From the sequence record NC_048077.1: a stretch of DNA of 64,000 nt; one strand, given 5' to 3'. This document shows, one piece after another, positions 11,540 to 18,377 of this stretch. Position 1 is the first letter of the stretch. Each line of letters begins with the position of its first letter. Both the position numbers and the translations under genes were made by a program. The notes under the pieces are model-generated. The model did not search any database. It worked only from the letters and a program-made list of their open reading frames with translations, and was not told where the DNA came from.

Positions 11540-11836
11540 ATGATTAGCGACATTACAGAGAATTTTATTTATTGTTCCCCTAGCGGAATTCCATTTCGCG
11601 TAAAAGAGATTGCTGCACACGGACAAGATTGTTCTCTGGCTATGGTTGTCTATGAGAATTTGGAACCTACGAAAGACTATCCGGCTTTTAAAACGTGGGT
11701 GCTTCCGGAATCTTTGTTCGTGAAACAGTTTTCTGAATATTCAGAAGGAAAGTTTTATGAACGAAACAACATTGTTGCATCATCTAAAATCGCGCCATTG
11801 GAATGCGGAGAAGCATTTCGGTTGGCTGTCTCCTAA
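11540..11836 (+). CDS. DUF1653-like protein
   Basis: FRVKEIAAH..C...MVVYENL......WVLPESLF matches the DUF1653 pattern. Confidence 0.6.
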   Translation: MISDITENFIYCSPSGIPFRVKEIAAHGQDCSLAMVVYENLEPTKDYPAFKTWVLPESLFVKQFSEYSEGKFYERNNIVASSKIAPLECGEAFRLAVS

Positions 11837-12267
11837 TCAACTGACTGTTCCGCTGTATAGTTTTGATCGCGCAATGCGCGGGGTTCAGGTATACACTCCG
11901 GAAGCGCCAAAGAAAGATCCTAATCCAAAAGCATGTCGTTATTTTACGCGGGTGTTTGGTGGCAAACAGTTGGTGTGGGGAACGGAAATTATACCTGAAC
12001 GGGACGACCGTATTTTTAACTGAATCAGTTTTCAAAGCGTGCGCATTACATAGCGTTGGCGCTAATGCGTGGTCTGTTCTCGGAAGCAAAGTAAACCAAC
12101 AATTGAAACAGCAATTGAGTTTGCTTGGTCTACGCTTTGTTTGCGTGGGCGATAACGATAAAGCGGGTGAAGAGTTTGCAGAAACTTTTCTGCACGGATG
12201 CACGTCGAATGATCTTGATGAGTTATCTCAAGATGAATTGCGTGAGTTAGTTAATAAATTCAGGTGA
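11757..12267 (+). pseudogene. Toprim-domain (primase-like) protein split by a frameshift at about 12012-12018
   Basis: The first frame ends ...DDRIFN* and the +1 frame continues FLTESVFKA...VCVGDNDKAG...DLDE (Toprim E and DxD motifs). Junction ATTTTTA; AAGGA RBS before ATG 11757; no RBS/ATG for the 3' half. Confidence 0.65.
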
Positions 12268-12271
12268 AGAA

Positions 12272-12451
12272 ATGACTAAAGAACAAAAAGAATTACTTGC
12301 CGCTGTTGAGACTGCTTATGGCGGGAAGCCGAAAGTTATTTGCGACGAAACAAATAACACGGTCGAGGATATTGAGAATAATAATCTCAATCTCACTATC
12401 ATTCTTCCTCTGCCTGCAAAGTTCATTAAGTTTGAAGCAGTAGTTCAATAG
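12272..12451 (+). CDS. 59-aa protein resembling the tail-sheath C-terminal segment (not in the ORF track)
   Basis: MTKEQKELLAAVETAYGGKPKVICDETNNTVEDIENNNLNLTIILPLPAKFIKFEAVVQ; AGGTG RBS; fills the gap exactly. Confidence 0.7.
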   Translation: MTKEQKELLAAVETAYGGKPKVICDETNNTVEDIENNNLNLTIILPLPAKFIKFEAVVQ

Positions 12452-12459
12452 GAAAACGT

Positions 12460-13302
12460 ATGATTCACGCGAGTCCAATTAAATTTCAAGGGAACAAGCG
12501 CCAGCTAATGCCTGTTATTCATAGCTTGCTCCCTACTGGCTGCACACGGATGATTGATGCTTTTGGCGGTAGCGGTGTTGTTACTGCCAACATGCAATTC
12601 AAATCGCGTCTGTACGTTGAGAAACATCCTCAAGTTTTCGAAATCGTTAAGCACATTTCGCAGAATGATCCGAAAGCAACTGTACGCCGTATTAAAAACA
12701 TGGTGAAGAAATTCGCGCTGACTAACAGCAACGAAAAACAGTTTGAGGATTTCAAGAAGTACGCGAACAACAAAAACGATCCACTGCTGTTTTATATTCT
12801 GCACCGCCATGCGCATAGCAACCTGTTGCGTTTTAATCTTTCTGGCGAATTCAATACGCCGTTTGGAGATCGTGGTCTGCTTGGTCGCATGGATGAAGTG
12901 GAACAGGAGATTACGAAGTTTTGCGAACTCATGGAAGGCGTTCAATTCTATTGCGGCAGTTACACTGGCGTAGTGGAAGCACTTCTTCGCCGAAAGCAAC
13001 TCAACGCGAAAACTTTTTTCTATTTCGATCCTCCTTATCTGGCCTCTGGCGCGAACACTTACGCCAAATGGACAGAAGAAGATGAACAGCGTTTGCTGAA
13101 CAATTTGGTAGGGCTTTCCAATCGTAACGTTCGTTGGATGTTGAGCAACGTTACAGAACATCGTCATTTCAAAAACCAATTCCTGATTAAATGGTTGAAG
13201 AAAAATGATGTAAAGGTACATAAGATCGACAAGCATTATTGTTTGGCGAACTCTCATCGCGATTCTCATGGAACAAAAGAGATCATCGTGACCAACTATT
13301 AG
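12460..13302 (+). CDS. dam: DNA adenine methyltransferase, Dam/D12 class
   Basis: SPIKFQGNK, SAM-binding DAFGGSG, catalytic FYFDPPY, WMLSN. Confidence 0.9.
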   Translation: MIHASPIKFQGNKRQLMPVIHSLLPTGCTRMIDAFGGSGVVTANMQFKSRLYVEKHPQVFEIVKHISQNDPKATVRRIKNMVKKFALTNSNEKQFEDFKKYANNKNDPLLFYILHRHAHSNLLRFNLSGEFNTPFGDRGLLGRMDEVEQEITKFCELMEGVQFYCGSYTGVVEALLRRKQLNAKTFFYFDPPYLASGANTYAKWTEEDEQRLLNNLVGLSNRNVRWMLSNVTEHRHFKNQFLIKWLKKNDVKVHKIDKHYCLANSHRDSHGTKEIIVTNY

Positions 13303-13469: not shown

Positions 13470-14192
13470 ATGGAAAACTTCGGTGCTATCTCTGCCAAAA
13501 GTTTGGGCAGATTCGAGGCATACGCGAAATGGGAATCAACGTTCGAACACGGTTCCAATTTTGAAATCTTTCTGAAACAGTCCGAAGCAGTACGCAAGGC
13601 GCTCTTTCTCAAAGAAGAAGATCTCGAATTGCTCCGCGACGTTTGGCGCACTTATCACGTTGGCATTCCGTCTGCGAATCATCAAGTGAACATTGTTATT
13701 GCGGCGTTGAATCTCGATCCTATTCAGGAAGTTTTACGCCGCTACAAAGACATTTTGGATCAACAAACGATAGTGGATGCTTACGAACATGGTGTGAACA
13801 TCTACGAAGAAATTGTTCTCATCCAAACCGCTCGCCGTATGGTTGACAGCAATATCGCTATGTATTGCGCGGAAGTATTGGTAAAGGATTACGAAGACCG
13901 AAACGAAAATCGTTGTCTTGCTTTTCCGGGTATGCCAAATCTTCACCCACTTCTGCAAATTGCTTTCGAATACACGGCAAAATATTTGGTCGAGGAAAAC
14001 GGTTCGTTTGTTAGTTCCATGATGACTCGCTTTAACGATCAACCAATCATCTACCGCTATCCGTTGGATATGTCAGACGACGGGAACGTTGTTATTTTAA
14101 CGGGCGGCGGTTCGATTTATCTGTTAGGCAAACCGCCGCGTACTGATACTGCGGCAAACCATTTGAAAATTGTAAGGAACACCGATGAGTAA
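13470..14192 (+). CDS. hypothetical protein
   Basis: AAGGA RBS; 240 aa. Confidence 0.7.
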   Translation: MENFGAISAKSLGRFEAYAKWESTFEHGSNFEIFLKQSEAVRKALFLKEEDLELLRDVWRTYHVGIPSANHQVNIVIAALNLDPIQEVLRRYKDILDQQTIVDAYEHGVNIYEEIVLIQTARRMVDSNIAMYCAEVLVKDYEDRNENRCLAFPGMPNLHPLLQIAFEYTAKYLVEENGSFVSSMMTRFNDQPIIYRYPLDMSDDGNVVILTGGGSIYLLGKPPRTDTAANHLKIVRNTDE

Positions 14193-14439
14193 CGAGAAGT
14201 GCGAAGAAGTTGGTTGTGTTGGGTCAGTCAGGCCAGACGGCGTAGAAGGTGTGCCGGGAAGCGATGAATGGACTCCAGCGGCAGGCAGTGAAAAAGGCAA
14301 ACTGGAAGATCCGTTCGACAACGAAAACTTTTTCGATAATCTGGAAGTCGATGAAAATCGCATTCTGGAAATGCAGAAAGGCGGCGGCGAAGTTGTGGAA
14401 CCGTCTAACGAATGCGAAAGCGGCGCGTGCATGATCTAA
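14185..14439 (+). CDS. small acidic protein with two CxxxxC motifs and an NrdA-like C-terminal tail
   Basis: N-terminal CEEVGC, C-terminal ECESGACMI*; AAGGA RBS. Confidence 0.7.
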   Translation: MSNEKCEEVGCVGSVRPDGVEGVPGSDEWTPAAGSEKGKLEDPFDNENFFDNLEVDENRILEMQKGGGEVVEPSNECESGACMI

Positions 14440-14447
14440 TATAAAAA

Positions 14448-14480
14448 CTGTAAATAAGGGGTAAGGAAACTTACCCTTTT
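14448..14480 (+). promoter_or_regulatory. CTGTAAATA motif + terminator hairpin (cassette 1)
   Basis: CTGTAAATA at 14448-14456; GGGTAAG-GAAA-CTTACCC then TTTT. Confidence 0.65.
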
Positions 14481-14519
14481 CTATTTGTGGTAGCTTTTTA
14501 ACTTTAATGGGGAAACCAT

Positions 14520-15098: not shown

Positions 15099-15463
15099 TG
15101 AAAGAAATTCTTATCACTCGCGAAAGAAGATCTGAAATGTTCAAACAACTTCTGGCACTCCAAACGCAATTCTTTCATGCGCGTAAATGGACGTGGCGTG
15201 AAGGTTGGTGCGCTGGCGAAGAGTGTGACGAATGGATAGATGAATCCGGTTCTATTATGTGGGCGTCTGTTCAGGATTACATTTTCTCGCCAGCAAACAT
15301 TATGATGTTCATGGAGAGACACGAAATCTCTATCGAGCATAACGGAAAAGAAAGTTACACGGCAATAACTAATACCGGGATTGTTGGTCACGGTATTTGC
15401 CACCGTAGCGCTGTATTGACAGCAATGATTAATCACTACAGGAAAGAAAATGGAATCAATTAA
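15098..15463 (+). CDS. hypothetical protein, NinX/ABA-sandwich-like
   Basis: TAATG coupling; ..SPANIMMFMERHEISI...YTA...G.G...SAVLTAMI resembles the NinX-type family. Confidence 0.5.
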   Translation: MKEILITRERRSEMFKQLLALQTQFFHARKWTWREGWCAGEECDEWIDESGSIMWASVQDYIFSPANIMMFMERHEISIEHNGKESYTAITNTGIVGHGICHRSAVLTAMINHYRKENGIN

Positions 15464-15944
15464 TCTGCCAATCAAAGATCGCGTACAGCATTACCCATTC
15501 CTTGCTGCGGCGTTCAGTCTGGCGAATATTTCTAAGGCGCGGCGTCGTGCGTGTGGCGCTGTTCTGGTTCGCGAGATTAACGGCATTCCGACTATCGTTG
15601 GTAGCGGAGTAAACGGAACGGAACCGAAGGAAGAAAACCTTTGCGAGACTCACGATCTCACGCTGTCTTTTCCCGGTACTGTTCACGCAGAGATCAATTG
15701 CGTTTCTCCTTTTCGCGAGAGCGCAAAAGACACGGACATTCTTTATATCACCGATTCGCCGTGTGAATTCTGTCTGGAGTTTTTGAAAACAACTTCGATT
15801 CGCACTGTTGTTTTCGCTCGCTGTTATCGCATCACGGAACATATGGAAAAAGCAGAAGGCTTCCGCTTTATTCATATTCCGGAACAGGCAGTGATTGACT
15901 ATATGAACAGTTCAATTTCTCGCATGTCGCAGGTTATTTCGTAA
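15450..15944 (+). CDS. dCMP deaminase
   Basis: SKARRRACGAVLV, VGSGVNG, Zn ligands HAE and SPCEFC. Confidence 0.9.
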   Translation: MESINLPIKDRVQHYPFLAAAFSLANISKARRRACGAVLVREINGIPTIVGSGVNGTEPKEENLCETHDLTLSFPGTVHAEINCVSPFRESAKDTDILYITDSPCEFCLEFLKTTSIRTVVFARCYRITEHMEKAEGFRFIHIPEQAVIDYMNSSISRMSQVIS

Positions 15945-16408: not shown

Positions 16409-17281
16409 ATGGACTACTACTTTTCTCTTGAAGAACTAAGAGCGTGGGCGCGAGTTTGTTTAATCGTGATCGTATTTGGTTCTCTCTTTTACTCGATGTA
16501 CACCAACTATGTGCGCAATAAATATGAAAAGATTGCGCGTCGTATGTACATCAATGGCGAGCTTGCTGCGGGTCAAGTGTGGCAGCATTATCGCAATAAG
16601 CGTTACTACACGATTCAGGTTGTGTCTAATGCAATTGCGAACGGCAAAGAGTGGCCTCTCACTATCGTATACATGACGGCGAAAGGTTATGCAGTTTACA
16701 GTCGTCCTGCGCACGAATTTATTCGCAAGTTTAAATTGGTGGACGAAGAATCAAACGCACGCGAAACTCCCACGCAAAATCTTCTTGCGTTAATGTCATA
16801 TGTGACGGGACGAGTTTCATTACCGGAACAAGGTTCTAAATGGGTGCGTGAATATGGAGTGCCTACTGGAACATTTAACGAACTCGGTCACTGCGAAACG
16901 CGATTGGTGAAAGAAAAGATTGTGGTTGATAACGTAACTAACCTCAATCAACCGTGTCCGTATGTGAACTATACAGATCAAAACGGTTCGAAGAAAACAA
17001 TCACGCTGCATCACTTCCGACAAAATTTTGTGAAAGATGTAGTGATTACGGATCGCGTGTCGCACTGCATTCTGAATAACGAGAATGTGGCAGCATTGGA
17101 CGAAGCGACTCTTCGCGATGGTGATCGCGTAACTGTAAAAGAAGTAGTAGATAACGAATTTATCGTTGTCGATTACTGCGGCATTTCTGCGAAACTTGTA
17201 ATGGCTACAAAAGGTTTTTACGTGGGCGCAGAATACGTTATTAATGATGGCTGTCTGACGATAGGGAAAGACGATGAGTAA
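16409..17281 (+). CDS. membrane-anchored protein with a DUF1653-like domain
   Basis: N-terminal TM (VCLIVIVFGSLFYSMY); GQVWQHYRNKRYYTI...TIVY....VYSRPAHEF. Confidence 0.6.
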   Translation: MDYYFSLEELRAWARVCLIVIVFGSLFYSMYTNYVRNKYEKIARRMYINGELAAGQVWQHYRNKRYYTIQVVSNAIANGKEWPLTIVYMTAKGYAVYSRPAHEFIRKFKLVDEESNARETPTQNLLALMSYVTGRVSLPEQGSKWVREYGVPTGTFNELGHCETRLVKEKIVVDNVTNLNQPCPYVNYTDQNGSKKTITLHHFRQNFVKDVVITDRVSHCILNNENVAALDEATLRDGDRVTVKEVVDNEFIVVDYCGISAKLVMATKGFYVGAEYVINDGCLTIGKDDE

Positions 17282-18377
17282 TTACCCGCAACTGGATCTC
17301 ACCAAAGAGCGCGACTTTGAAATGTACGCTTACGACAATTACGATTGTTTGTATATGGGGCGCGTCGATGCAATCAGAGCCGAAGGGCGTCCGGTGAGCG
17401 ATCCGAAACGTACAGAAGATCAGTGGCGCACAATTCCCGGTTGTGTTATCCAACTTGCAAATACAGCAATGGCTTTCCCTGCGCCGCTTTCTAAAAAAGC
17501 AAATTGGGTTGCGGCTGTTGATGAAAGCTGCTGGTTCATGCGAGGCGAAACAAATATCAATTCACTCAATTCTAAAATTTGGGATGAGTGGGCTGATGAA
17601 TCCGGCGAATGTGGCCCGATCTATGGTGAAATGTGGCGGCGCTGGCCTGACCTCAAAGCGTTCTATGATTACACGCAACCTTCTGGCGTGTGTCCGGATG
17701 CCGATGTGATTCGTGCTCGCAAAGAAATCGAACGTATGCGTGCGGCAGGCTACAAAGAAACGATGATGCTGGACGGTCGCATTCTGTTTGAAGGCGAAAT
17801 TGATCAGTTGCTGGAAGCGTTAATCGCAATCAAAGATCGTTCGCGTTCGCGCCGCATTCGTGTTCAGGCATTCAATCCTTCTTATCTGCATATGCAGGGA
17901 TTGCCGCCGTGTCACACTGGTTTCGAATTCAACGTGTTGCCGTCAACGCTTTATGAACAAACGATCATGCGTGCTGCACACGGAGAAGCGTTCGAAGAAA
18001 CTCTGCACATTAGCGTCTTTCTTAGATCAAGTGATACCCTCTTGGGTTTGCCCTTTAATGTGATCGGCTATTGCTCTATCTTCCATCTGTTCGCGAAATA
18101 TTGCGGTCTGAATATCGGTAGCTTTACGATTGACAGCACCAACACGCACGTTTACGAACATCACTGGTCGGCGCTGGATAAACAGCGTGAGCAATTCGAA
18201 GAACTGGTTGCGGAAGTTCGTAGCACTGGCAATCCGATGCAATATCCGATCATGCGTATCGATCCGAAAATCTTCTCGCTGGAGCCGAAAGAACTTCTGG
18301 ATTCGATTAGCGTAGAAATGTTTAATCTCGAAGGTTACAATCCGAAAGGTAAGATTACCGGGCGCGTGACCAAATAA
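17274..18377 (+). CDS. thyA: thymidylate synthase
   Basis: ESCWFMRGETN, IWDEWA, GPIYG, SRRI, catalytic LPPCH, RSSD.LLGLPFN, HVY. Confidence 0.9.
   Translation: MSNYPQLDLTKERDFEMYAYDNYDCLYMGRVDAIRAEGRPVSDPKRTEDQWRTIPGCVIQLANTAMAFPAPLSKKANWVAAVDESCWFMRGETNINSLNSKIWDEWADESGECGPIYGEMWRRWPDLKAFYDYTQPSGVCPDADVIRARKEIERMRAAGYKETMMLDGRILFEGEIDQLLEALIAIKDRSRSRRIRVQAFNPSYLHMQGLPPCHTGFEFNVLPSTLYEQTIMRAAHGEAFEETLHISVFLRSSDTLLGLPFNVIGYCSIFHLFAKYCGLNIGSFTIDSTNTHVYEHHWSALDKQREQFEELVAEVRSTGNPMQYPIMRIDPKIFSLEPKELLDSISVEMFNLEGYNPKGKITGRVTK

Follow-up and report, generated by a model that had tools for sequence, protein, structure and literature searches.

The gp019 gene and its surroundings in phage JA11

We analyzed a 64,000-nucleotide stretch of DNA (hereafter the window) from record NC_048077.1, the genome of the Dickeya jumbo phage vB_DsoM_JA11, in which the window coordinates equal those of the record. 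At the center of this work is gp019, annotated in RefSeq as a hypothetical protein. The gene encodes 84 amino acids, starting with MSNEKCEEVGC and ending with SNECESGACMI, and its position and neighbors are given in the table below. The protein is acidic (pI 4.05, with 21 D/E against 6 K/R) and is predicted to be mostly disordered, the AF2 model having a mean pLDDT of 57 and a pTM of 0.21. It carries two CxxxxC motifs, C6/C11 and C77/C82, and the second one lies in a tail that resembles the C-terminal end of NrdA, the alpha subunit of class Ia ribonucleotide reductase (RNR).

Table. Features of the gp019 locus and its context, in window coordinates. P0001 and P0002 are members of the gp019 family, and A2 and A3 are alignments of this family.
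Position	Strand	Feature	Evidence
13470..14192	+	gp018 (240 aa, unknown function), overlapping and probably translationally coupled upstream gene; a partner role is possible but not shown	Overlap of 8 nt with gp019; no Pfam or PHROG hit; not homologous to the upstream genes or N-domains of other lineages
14174..14178	+	Shine-Dalgarno-like AAGGA, 6 nt before the ATG; the start codon overlaps the end of gp018	Read from the sequence
14185..14439	+	gp019 CDS (84 aa and stop), small acidic, disordered protein with an NrdA-like C-terminal redox tail	ORF list; RefSeq CDS HOU32_gp019; dN/dS 0.11 against JA29 over the last 46 codons; family of 89 distinct sequences
14185..14298	+	Variable N-terminal region (aa 1-38) with the non-conserved first CxxxxC (C6, C11)	Poorly aligned, with indels; first Cys pair absent from JA29, P0002 and even the 93%-identical P0001
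14299..14379	+	Conserved acidic segment (aa 39-65) with the only predicted helix (aa 57-65)	Alignments A2 and A3; AF2 model
14380..14391	+	Gly-Gly-Gly-Glu run (aa 66-69), the most conserved stretch outside the tail	In A3, G66 and G67 invariant, G68 and E69 at least 90% conserved; run present in 81 of 86 members
14392..14412	+	Short acidic linker (aa 70-76)	A3; distance from the Gly run to the end is 17-22 residues, and 19 in 49 of 81 members
14413..14436	+	C-terminal tail CESGACMI (aa 77-84), 7 of 8 residues identical to the last 8 of E. coli NrdA	BLASTP; blastn match starting at 14413; host-type NrdA tails; named PDB hits
14456..14489	+	Terminator-like hairpin (10-bp stem, T-rich tail) 17 nt after the stop codon	An annotated terminator also follows the Miami orthologue
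15450..15944	+	dCMP deaminase gene (context)	Annotation; same neighborhood in Alexandra, Y3, Yoloswag, SNUABM_32/7 and the metagenomic locus L026
17274..18377	+	Thymidylate-synthase (ThyA)-like gene (context)	Annotation; the small gene lies between the two genes in Y3, Yoloswag and L026, and upstream of both in JA11

E. coli NrdA ends in DDGCESGACKI, and BLASTP aligns its C-terminal end with that of gp019 end to end. A blastn search with 113 nt of this region against 5,426 E. coli genomes hit only the 3' end of nrdA, in 146 genomes and with a weak E-value. This likeness is more than chance. Indeed, among the 840 ORFs of at least 50 aa found in JA11, five end in a Cys pair, and gp019 is the only annotated gene among them and the only one that ends in C-x4-C-x-I. 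The Alexandra orthologue shares its last 10 residues with E. coli NrdA, and a 25-residue query from this orthologue returned, from the whole PDB, only RNR R1 chains and the free R1 peptide of entry 1QFN as named hits, all aligned end to end. With gp019 itself, neither Pfam, NCBIfam nor the PDB gave anything significant, and the PHROGs gave only a weak match to a family of unknown function.

The original prediction, that this is a stand-alone protein ending in the redox tail of RNR, with no adjacent nrdA in the window and with dCMP deaminase and thyA nearby, is correct as an observation. Its interpretation is partly supported: the tail likeness is real, sits at the exact C-terminus and is conserved across a family, the protein is free-standing, and our searches of a literature library found no description of it. 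However, the presence of two CxxxxC motifs, which had been given as a feature of the protein, is a peculiarity of JA11, since 75 of 89 family members have only the tail Cys pair; we thus rejected the N-terminal motif as part of the device.

A family of proteins sharing a C-terminal module

gp019 belongs to an uncharacterized family of 89 distinct sequences found in several unrelated jumbo-phage lineages, and all hosts named in the records are Enterobacterales, apart from one Stenotrophomonas-labelled record. The family module is made of an acidic helix, a Gly run, an acidic linker and a terminal Cys-x(2-4)-Cys-x-Ile. Loss of the motif in orthologues had been named in advance as an outcome that would count against the prediction, but both Cys and the terminal Ile are invariant in a 47-sequence alignment. 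Furthermore, 36 of the 89 members share at least 7 of their last 8 residues with E. coli NrdA, 11 end exactly in CESGACKI and 12 in CEGGACKI, which are the two variants found in the NrdA of Enterobacterales, including Pectobacteriaceae (the NrdA of Dickeya solani itself was not among the sequences examined). In the 45 hits obtained among 1.84 billion representatives, the module is always at the end of the protein, and none of these hits is a full-length NrdA.

The possibility that gp019 is a decaying remnant of a captured nrdA 3' end, or a chance ORF with no function, was considered, since 24 of its last 27 nucleotides are identical to the E. coli nrdA 3' end and since phages do capture host RNR genes, for example the NrdB of the phage PCH45. 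It is very unlikely and is contradicted by the conservation data: the gene is under purifying selection (the dN/dS value in the table was obtained at a dS of 0.89), it has its own start codon and Shine-Dalgarno-like sequence and is followed by a terminator-like hairpin, there are synonymous differences in the tail codons across the family, and the sequence upstream of the tail is unlike NrdA.

Several features of the family, which could not be seen from the JA11 sequence alone, complicate any simple story. First, the Cys spacing is of 4 residues in 61, 3 in 9 and 2 in 11 of 81 members. It does not covary with the host, as it differs among phages of the same host, Erwinia amylovora (4 in Alexandra, 3 in SNUABM_37, and 2 in Y3 and Yoloswag), so that exact mimicry of the host tail is not required. 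Second, the most invariant element outside the Cys pair, namely the Gly run with its Glu, has no counterpart in NrdA. We also asked whether the acidic helix could mimic the C-terminal alpha-binding peptide of NrdB, but found no support beyond composition: the profile of the helix region of the family scores the last 30 residues of E. coli NrdB at 1.3 bits, against 0.02 +/- 1.4 for shuffles, and 308 of 1915 shuffles do as well.

Third, the module is either alone or fused to at least two unrelated N-domains that have no conserved Cys. The AF2 model of one of them (type B, pLDDT 66.5) had no fold match in the PDB at E up to 0.001, and no Pfam or PHROG annotation was found, so no function could be drawn from this side. 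Split and fused versions of the same N-domain do exist (SNUABM_37 against SA002 and the family member P0053, and SNUABM_54 against the member P0069), but a conserved two-gene module with the upstream gene was rejected, since the upstream genes and fused N-domains are not homologous across lineages.

Fourth, a similar acidic ORF of 42 aa is found in Neisseria, where it lies between iscS and iscU, in the Fe-S (isc) operon and not with nrd genes, in 5 of 6 loci, and is seen on more than 1000 contigs. Its tail matches 11 of the last 12 residues of N. gonorrhoeae NrdA, and the phage-family profile scores the most divergent Neisseria copy at 27.5 bits, against 11.6 +/- 3.0 for shuffles in which the tail was held fixed. 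This allows one to consider that the tail is a general dithiol arm, reducible by thioredoxin or glutaredoxin, whose real client is not RNR but the IscS/IscU Fe-S assembly machinery in Neisseria and, in phages, the fused or adjacent partner protein or another host enzyme. The fusion or translational coupling of the module with varied N-domains would fit this view. We find it unlikely, however, since the N-domains have no conserved Cys to be reduced, the partner genes are not homologous across lineages, the residue-by-residue match is to NrdA and to nothing else in the PDB, and the phage genes sit with nucleotide-metabolism genes, not Fe-S genes.

The architecture of the module also recalls that of a leader-plus-core precursor peptide, such as a RiPP or a bacteriocin, in which the acidic helix and the Gly run would be a leader with a cleavage site and the last 17-22 residues would be released, and perhaps modified, as the active product; alternatively, the protein could be the substrate of a phage protease, with its pieces ending up in the virion. 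The Gly run does lie at a nearly fixed distance from a short Cys-containing end, but it is not known whether cleavage takes place, and a double-glycine leader is neither established nor excluded. One source names a Neisseria member (P0212) "FxLD family lantipeptide", and in some chimallivirus-like genomes the gene lies near virion and protease genes. Nevertheless, no Pfam precursor model matched, and no NCBIfam precursor model matched any of the 10 members scanned at E up to 10, including P0212, the only hit being a weak FeoC match (E 0.1) for the Alexandra member. In addition, 12 of 89 members have no Ser or Thr after the Gly run, and the Ser inside the Cys pair is often Gly, so lanthionine rings cannot be a family feature. 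No modification enzyme, peptidase-transporter or immunity gene was seen next to the gene in JA11 or at the loci L025 and L026, and no modification-enzyme or peptidase-transporter family in the Neisseria isc context. This improbable reading does not explain the match to NrdA either, unless the released peptide is itself the mimic of the NrdA tail.

Proposed connection of the tail protein to the host reductase

The original prediction proposed to check whether a phage nrdA encoded elsewhere lacks its tail. This check has no object, because JA11 has no nrdA or nrdB at all in its 255-kb genome. None of the three phage genomes that we examined in full has an RNR alpha subunit, with the restriction that only class I RNR genes were searched by sequence in PCH45 and Alexandra. 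In the Alexandra genome, the only tblastn hit of E. coli NrdA is the small ORF itself, aligned to NrdA residues 737-761. PCH45 carries an NrdB that is 80% identical to that of E. coli, so it must pair with the host NrdA. Such co-occurrence is not general, since among the phages that we listed, only PCH45 has both the NrdB and the tail protein. A motif scan of JA11 for a phage-encoded thioredoxin or glutaredoxin, which is only a heuristic, found nothing convincing. Finally, the gene lies in the dCMP deaminase/ThyA neighborhood in the JA11/Alexandra/Y3/Yoloswag lineage.

Taken together, the best explanation is that gp019 is a genuine phage gene for a small, acidic, intrinsically disordered protein that carries at its very end a copy of the redox-active tail of the host-type NrdA, and that is neither a reductase nor a fragment of one. 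The alpha tail shuttles between thioredoxin and the active site, and the binding of tail and substrate to the active site are mutually exclusive (PMC11903788). In the mechanism that we propose, the free tail would be recognized and reduced by the host thioredoxin or glutaredoxin, as the natural NrdA tail is, and the reduced dithiol would then enter the active site of the host NrdA and re-reduce the disulfide left after each turnover, acting as an extra electron shuttle in trans. This would help to sustain the deoxynucleotide supply of a phage that depends on the host enzyme. What the sequences establish is the gene, its conservation, the identity of its tail, the absence of a phage alpha subunit and the nucleotide-metabolism neighborhood, while every redox step, the target and the sign of the effect are inferred by us; no binding or redox data exist, and no complex was modelled. 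It is also not obvious that there is a benefit in trans, since a free peptide must compete with a native tail that is tethered next to the active site. We hold this positive shuttle only tentatively, and consider it somewhat more likely than not that the protein acts, in one direction or the other, on the partners of the NrdA tail.

The original prediction offered three functions, a shuttle, a thioredoxin/glutaredoxin decoy and an RNR inhibitor, none of which has been tested. The last two amount to the same mimicry with the opposite sign: the free tail would occupy the NrdA active site, or tie up thioredoxin or glutaredoxin, and so lower host RNR activity or divert reducing power. It would work like the small disordered eukaryotic RNR inhibitors of the Sml1 type. 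Peptide mimics of mobile tails usually compete, and the mutually exclusive binding of tail and substrate and the small, acidic and disordered nature of the protein would be consistent with this. Raised dNTP levels driven by phage RNR can trigger defence reverse transcriptases (bioRxiv 10.64898/2026.10.27.754916), so damping dNTP synthesis could in principle pay off, and in Neisseria the isc-operon position would fit a brake on an iron-dependent enzyme when Fe-S supply is short. However, JA11 and Alexandra have no class I RNR gene, and PCH45 even supplies an NrdB that needs the host NrdA, so that blocking the latter would starve the phage unless it lives on salvage alone. It can also be inferred that a mixed disulfide with thioredoxin would be resolved when both Cys are present, making a stable trap unlikely, and that a free peptide competes poorly with a tethered tail. 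Sequence and context favor an effect on the host enzyme and lean towards support rather than inhibition, without deciding between them, and we regard inhibition as unlikely.

A broader, and doubtful, possibility is that free-standing redox-tail peptides are a new class of trans-acting regulators or co-factors of class Ia RNR. In this view, jumbo phages lacking the catalytic subunit would deploy a portable copy of the host NrdA tail, alone or hung on other domains, to tap the thioredoxin/glutaredoxin system and control host dNTP synthesis, while Neisseria would use the same device under control of its isc operon to couple RNR to iron-sulfur status. This would be the first viral, and the first bacterial, regulator of RNR that works by alpha-tail mimicry. 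RNR is the bottleneck of DNA-precursor synthesis and a drug target, and its re-reduction by the mobile alpha tail is the least understood half of its cycle. A natural free tail, conserved in about 90 phage proteins and in a widespread Neisseria ORF, would give a ready-made probe for how the tail docks to thioredoxin, glutaredoxin and the active site, would show a new way in which viruses without their own reductase manage the host nucleotide supply, and would hint at a link between Fe-S assembly and RNR in Neisseria. It also gives a first functional lead for a family that the databases list as hypothetical.

Relation to known redox tails and RNR partners

The closest known element is the C-terminal redox tail of NrdA itself (residues about 737-761 in E. 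coli, with Cys754/Cys759), an acidic flexible stretch that also ends in Cys-x4-Cys-x-Ile at the very C-terminus. gp019, however, is not attached to a reductase: it has no catalytic ten-stranded barrel and no ATP cone, and no Pfam family was found at E up to 10, while the NrdA homologues carry PF02867, PF00317 and PF03477. The acidic helix of the family, like the Gly run, has no counterpart in NrdA. gp019 is not a thioredoxin-fold reductant (Trx, Grx, NrdH) with a CxxC active site either, as it has no Pfam hit and no folded domain in its model.

The small disordered RNR regulators of eukaryotes (Sml1/Spd1/Hug1 type) are thought to act on the large subunit, and Sml1 is reported to interfere with the action of its C-terminal Cys pair. 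The Pfam search revealed no sequence relation of gp019 to these proteins, which do not carry the redox tail themselves and are cellular and eukaryotic, not viral; whether gp019 binds the large subunit and lowers its activity was not assayed. Among phage families, phrog_10239 (47 positions) matches the C-terminal module of the two-residue-spacing members P0053, P0067 and P0073. gp019 itself does not reach this family and has only the weak match mentioned above, to phrog_34655 (E 0.07), and neither family carries a function or a link to RNR.

A redox tail encoded as its own polypeptide is already known in NrdJb, the separately encoded C-terminal domain of split class II RNR (NrdJa+b) (PMC5704485). 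According to that paper, NrdJb is a folded, zinc-binding, Cys-rich domain encoded next to its catalytic partner in the same genome, while gp019 is predicted to be disordered, belongs to a family with only two conserved Cys, lies in a genome with no RNR catalytic subunit, and resembles the class Ia tail of the host. Finally, the "beta-only" phages, which encode a host-like NrdB (phiEcoM-GJ1-like phages, PCH45 and several jumbo phages), represent another way in which phages without an alpha subunit add a piece to the host class Ia enzyme. In their case the piece is a complete, recognizable subunit, whereas the tail protein is only a copy of a mobile element of 10-25 residues.

The gp019 gene and its likeness to NrdA

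The window corresponds to the first 64 kb of Dickeya phage vB_DsoM_JA11 (Salmondvirus, 255,356 bp), and its coordinates are those of the phage record. The gene of interest is the annotated CDS gp019, which is listed as a hypothetical protein of 84 aa. An AAGGA lies 6 nt before its ATG, its start overlaps the stop of gp018 by 8 nt, and a terminator-like hairpin with a 10-bp stem and a T-rich tail follows 17 nt after its stop codon. The protein has a pI of 4.05, with 21 acidic against 6 basic residues, and the AlphaFold2 model obtained with a 47-sequence alignment has a mean pLDDT of 57, a pTM of 0.21 and a single predicted helix at residues 57-65. Against the JA29 orthologue, the last 46 codons give a dS of 0.89, a dN of 0.10 and a dN/dS of 0.11. 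It is therefore a real gene under purifying selection, and the possibility that it is a mere gene remnant is contradicted by these conservation data.

E. coli nrdA was retrieved through a blastn hit of the gp019 3' end. NrdA ends in DDGCESGACKI while gp019 ends in SNECESGACMI, and BLASTP pairs the two C-terminal ends at 7/8 identities, so that the observation at the origin of this work holds. The NrdA of other Enterobacterales ends in DGCESGACKI (74 of 113 sequences) or in DGCEGGACKI (13 of 113), and it is the second form that is found in Pectobacterium, Brenneria and Symbiopectobacterium, which are in the family of Dickeya; the Dickeya sequence itself was not part of this comparison. A 25-residue query from the orthologue of phage Alexandra returned 11 distinct PDB sequences, which were all E. 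coli RNR R1 chains or the free 25-mer R1 peptide of entry 1QFN, aligned end to end, although with weak E-values (0.2-0.8) because the match is short. We also tested whether the acidic helix could mimic the tail of NrdB, and this was not supported.

Coordinates of the features discussed in the text (L007, locus of phage JA29; L022, locus of phage PCH45; the other L numbers are loci and P0069 is a protein, as described in each row)
Feature	Location	Strand	Observation
gp019	JA11 14185-14439	+	Small protein with the NrdA-like tail
gp015 and gp016	JA11 12272-13302, compared with L007:1962-3070		Product names apparently shifted by one gene relative to JA29
Primase-like region	JA11 11540-12267		Three overlapping ORFs in different frames
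Thymidylate-synthase-like gene	JA11 17274-18377, compared with L007:7011-8177		Uninterrupted in JA11, shorter annotation in JA29
N-terminal domain, separate in Erwinia phages SNUABM_37 and SNUABM_54, fused in Salmonella phage SA002 and metagenomic relatives	L017:2536-3084 against L014:2590-3081; L012:2664-3153 against P0069		Split and fused forms
NrdB of Serratia phage PCH45	NC_091964.1 124783-125889 (L022:24783-25889)		Full-length host-like NrdB
Gene three ORFs upstream of a fused tail protein	L025:1526-2809 (PCH45-like metagenomic contig)		Hit to the Pfam family AcrVA2-like
42-aa acidic ORF of Neisseria meningitidis	L076:5063-5191; also in the Neisseria loci L027, L036, L077, L081 and L085	+	NrdA-like tail

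The family and its fused forms

The gene was found by tblastn in about 60 phage records, all of which are jumbo phages of 212-294 kb. Their named hosts are Dickeya, Erwinia, Serratia, Klebsiella, Raoultella, Yersinia and Salmonella, plus one record labelled Stenotrophomonas. A profile search of 5.8 billion protein clusters gave 46 proteins, and a full HMMER pass over 1.84 billion representatives gave 45. In every one of these 45 the match runs to the last or next-to-last residue of the protein, and none is a full-length NrdA. Altogether, 89 distinct sequences were collected, of which 65 are at most 65 aa, 7 are 66-100 aa and 17 are longer. A lack of conservation of the motif in orthologues had been set in advance as an outcome that would count against the original prediction, but in the 47-sequence alignment both tail Cys, the terminal Ile and two Gly of a Gly-Gly-Gly-Glu run are invariant. 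Among the 89 proteins, 11 end in CESGACKI and 12 in CEGGACKI, while 36 share at least 7 of their last 8 residues with E. coli NrdA. The original prediction had also pointed to a first CxxxxC motif near the N-terminus of the JA11 protein, but this is not a family feature, and 75 of the 89 proteins contain only the two tail Cys. The Cys spacing is 4 in 61, 3 in 9 and 2 in 11 of 81 members, and 80 of 81 end in Ile. Phages of a single host, Erwinia amylovora (loci L010, L017, L018 and L019), carry tails with spacings of 4 (Alexandra), 3 (SNUABM_37) and 2 (Yoloswag, Y3), and all of them keep the terminal residues.

The module also ends longer proteins with at least two unrelated N-domains, one of about 100 aa, as in Salmonella phage SA002, and one of about 200 aa, as in the family protein P0048, while further types occur in Yoloswag gp34 and in P0069. 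In SNUABM_37 and SNUABM_54, the same N-domains are separate ORFs just upstream of the small gene, so split and fused forms both exist. Such partner domains could be the client of a thioredoxin-reducible arm that does not serve RNR, but they have no conserved Cys. They have no Pfam or PHROG annotation, and a moderately confident model (pLDDT 66.5) had no fold match. The overlapping upstream gene of JA11, gp018, is unrelated to all of them.

Genomic context in phages and in Neisseria

Whether a phage nrdA encoded elsewhere in the genome lacks its tail had been put forward as a check of the original prediction. In JA11, no RNR is annotated, tblastn with E. coli NrdA, NrdB and YfaE finds nothing at E below 1, and the 13 unannotated ORFs above about 500 aa have no RNR domain. 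The check has no object, because JA11 has no nrdA or nrdB at all. In Alexandra (266,532 bp, same broad lineage), there is no NrdA or NrdB, and the only hit of NrdA is the small ORF itself, aligned to NrdA residues 737-761. Classes II and III were excluded in JA11 only through Pfam on large ORFs, and in Alexandra and PCH45 only through their annotation. Serratia phage PCH45, which is not syntenic with JA11 around this gene, encodes an NrdB 80% identical to that of E. coli over all 376 residues, but no NrdA. Host-like NrdB without a listed host-like NrdA also occurs in phiEcoM-GJ1-like phages and in several other jumbo phages (pEt-SU, OBP, Kc263, AH04, N1M2 and Ea35-70), and of these only PCH45 also appears in the lists of phages carrying the tail protein.

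In the JA11/Alexandra/Y3/Yoloswag lineage and in a metagenomic relative (locus L026), the gene lies in the neighbourhood of the dCMP deaminase and ThyA-like genes. In Y3, Yoloswag and L026 it sits between the two genes, whereas in JA11 it lies about 1 kb upstream of the dCMP deaminase gene, which itself precedes the ThyA-like gene. The latter is an uninterrupted gene of 367 aa in JA11, but in JA29 it is annotated as only 255 aa and is followed by an 'endonuclease' gene, which may reflect a homing-endonuclease or intron insertion in JA29. Some product names in the JA11 RefSeq record look shifted by one gene relative to JA29, since the 59-aa gp015 is labelled 'putative DNA adenine methylase' and the 280-aa gp016 'hypothetical', whereas in JA29 it is the 280-aa gene that carries the methylase name. 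In the primase-like region of JA11, which appears as three overlapping ORFs in different frames, one short piece is annotated 'DNA primase', and JA29 and Alexandra also annotate only short primase pieces; this could be a split gene, a programmed frameshift or decay. In PCH45-like genomes, the tail gene sits before a Kelch-repeat gene.

A degenerate DNA pattern for the host-type tail was then scanned over one genome per bacterial species, and it gave 80 readable loci. Of these, 74 were nrdA 3' ends, and the other six were all Neisseria, with a 42-aa acidic ORF whose last 12 residues match those of N. gonorrhoeae NrdA (PDB 7MDI) at 11 positions. In five of the six loci, it lies between iscS and iscU, about 70 nt before iscU, a context in which IscS/IscU would be another conceivable client of a thioredoxin-reducible arm. 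The ORF is annotated 'hypothetical protein' and is seen on more than 1000 contigs. One source calls one member 'FxLD family lantipeptide', a name that NCBIfam does not reproduce. The phage-family profile scores the most divergent Neisseria copy at 27.5 bits, against 11.6 +/- 3.0 for shuffles with the tail held fixed (1 of 2000 as good), and for the N. meningitidis copy the part upstream of the tail scores 6.3 against 1.6 +/- 1.7 (33 of 2000). Free-standing NrdA-tail-like peptides are therefore not confined to phages.

Possible function and relation to known redox tails

In class I RNR, the alpha tail swings between thioredoxin or glutaredoxin and the active site, where tail and substrate exclude each other (PMC11903788). 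The PDB holds the R1 tail as a separate 25-residue chain in entry 1QFN, which is its complex with glutaredoxin 1. A free copy of the tail should therefore be a substrate of the host reductants and, as a small dithiol with the native sequence, it could reach the NrdA active site. The three phages carrying it whose genomes were checked lack the alpha subunit, one of them adds a beta subunit, and in one lineage the gene sits among dTTP-synthesis genes. We therefore favor, tentatively, a supporting role as an extra electron shuttle for host NrdA over an inhibitory one, in which the same mimicry would act with the opposite sign, as an inhibitor or decoy. The gene, its conservation and its likeness to NrdA come out of the analysis itself, but none of these mechanistic steps is shown. 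The interpretation given in the original prediction is partly supported, and the three functions that it offered, namely a redox shuttle acting in trans, a Trx/Grx decoy or a competitive RNR inhibitor, remain untested. The model leaves three observations unexplained: the variable Cys spacing in phages of a single host, the strictly conserved Gly run, which NrdA lacks, and the fusions together with the Neisseria isc context. The Gly run could also be read as the site at which a leader-plus-core precursor is cut, which constitutes a further rival to the shuttle model.

PHROG holds families for parts of this module, with 'unknown function', and we found no paper on it in the literature searched. 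A genetically separate redox tail domain is already known for class II enzymes (PMC5704485). We consider the module described here as a free-standing version of the RNR redox tail, and not as a member of any RNR family.
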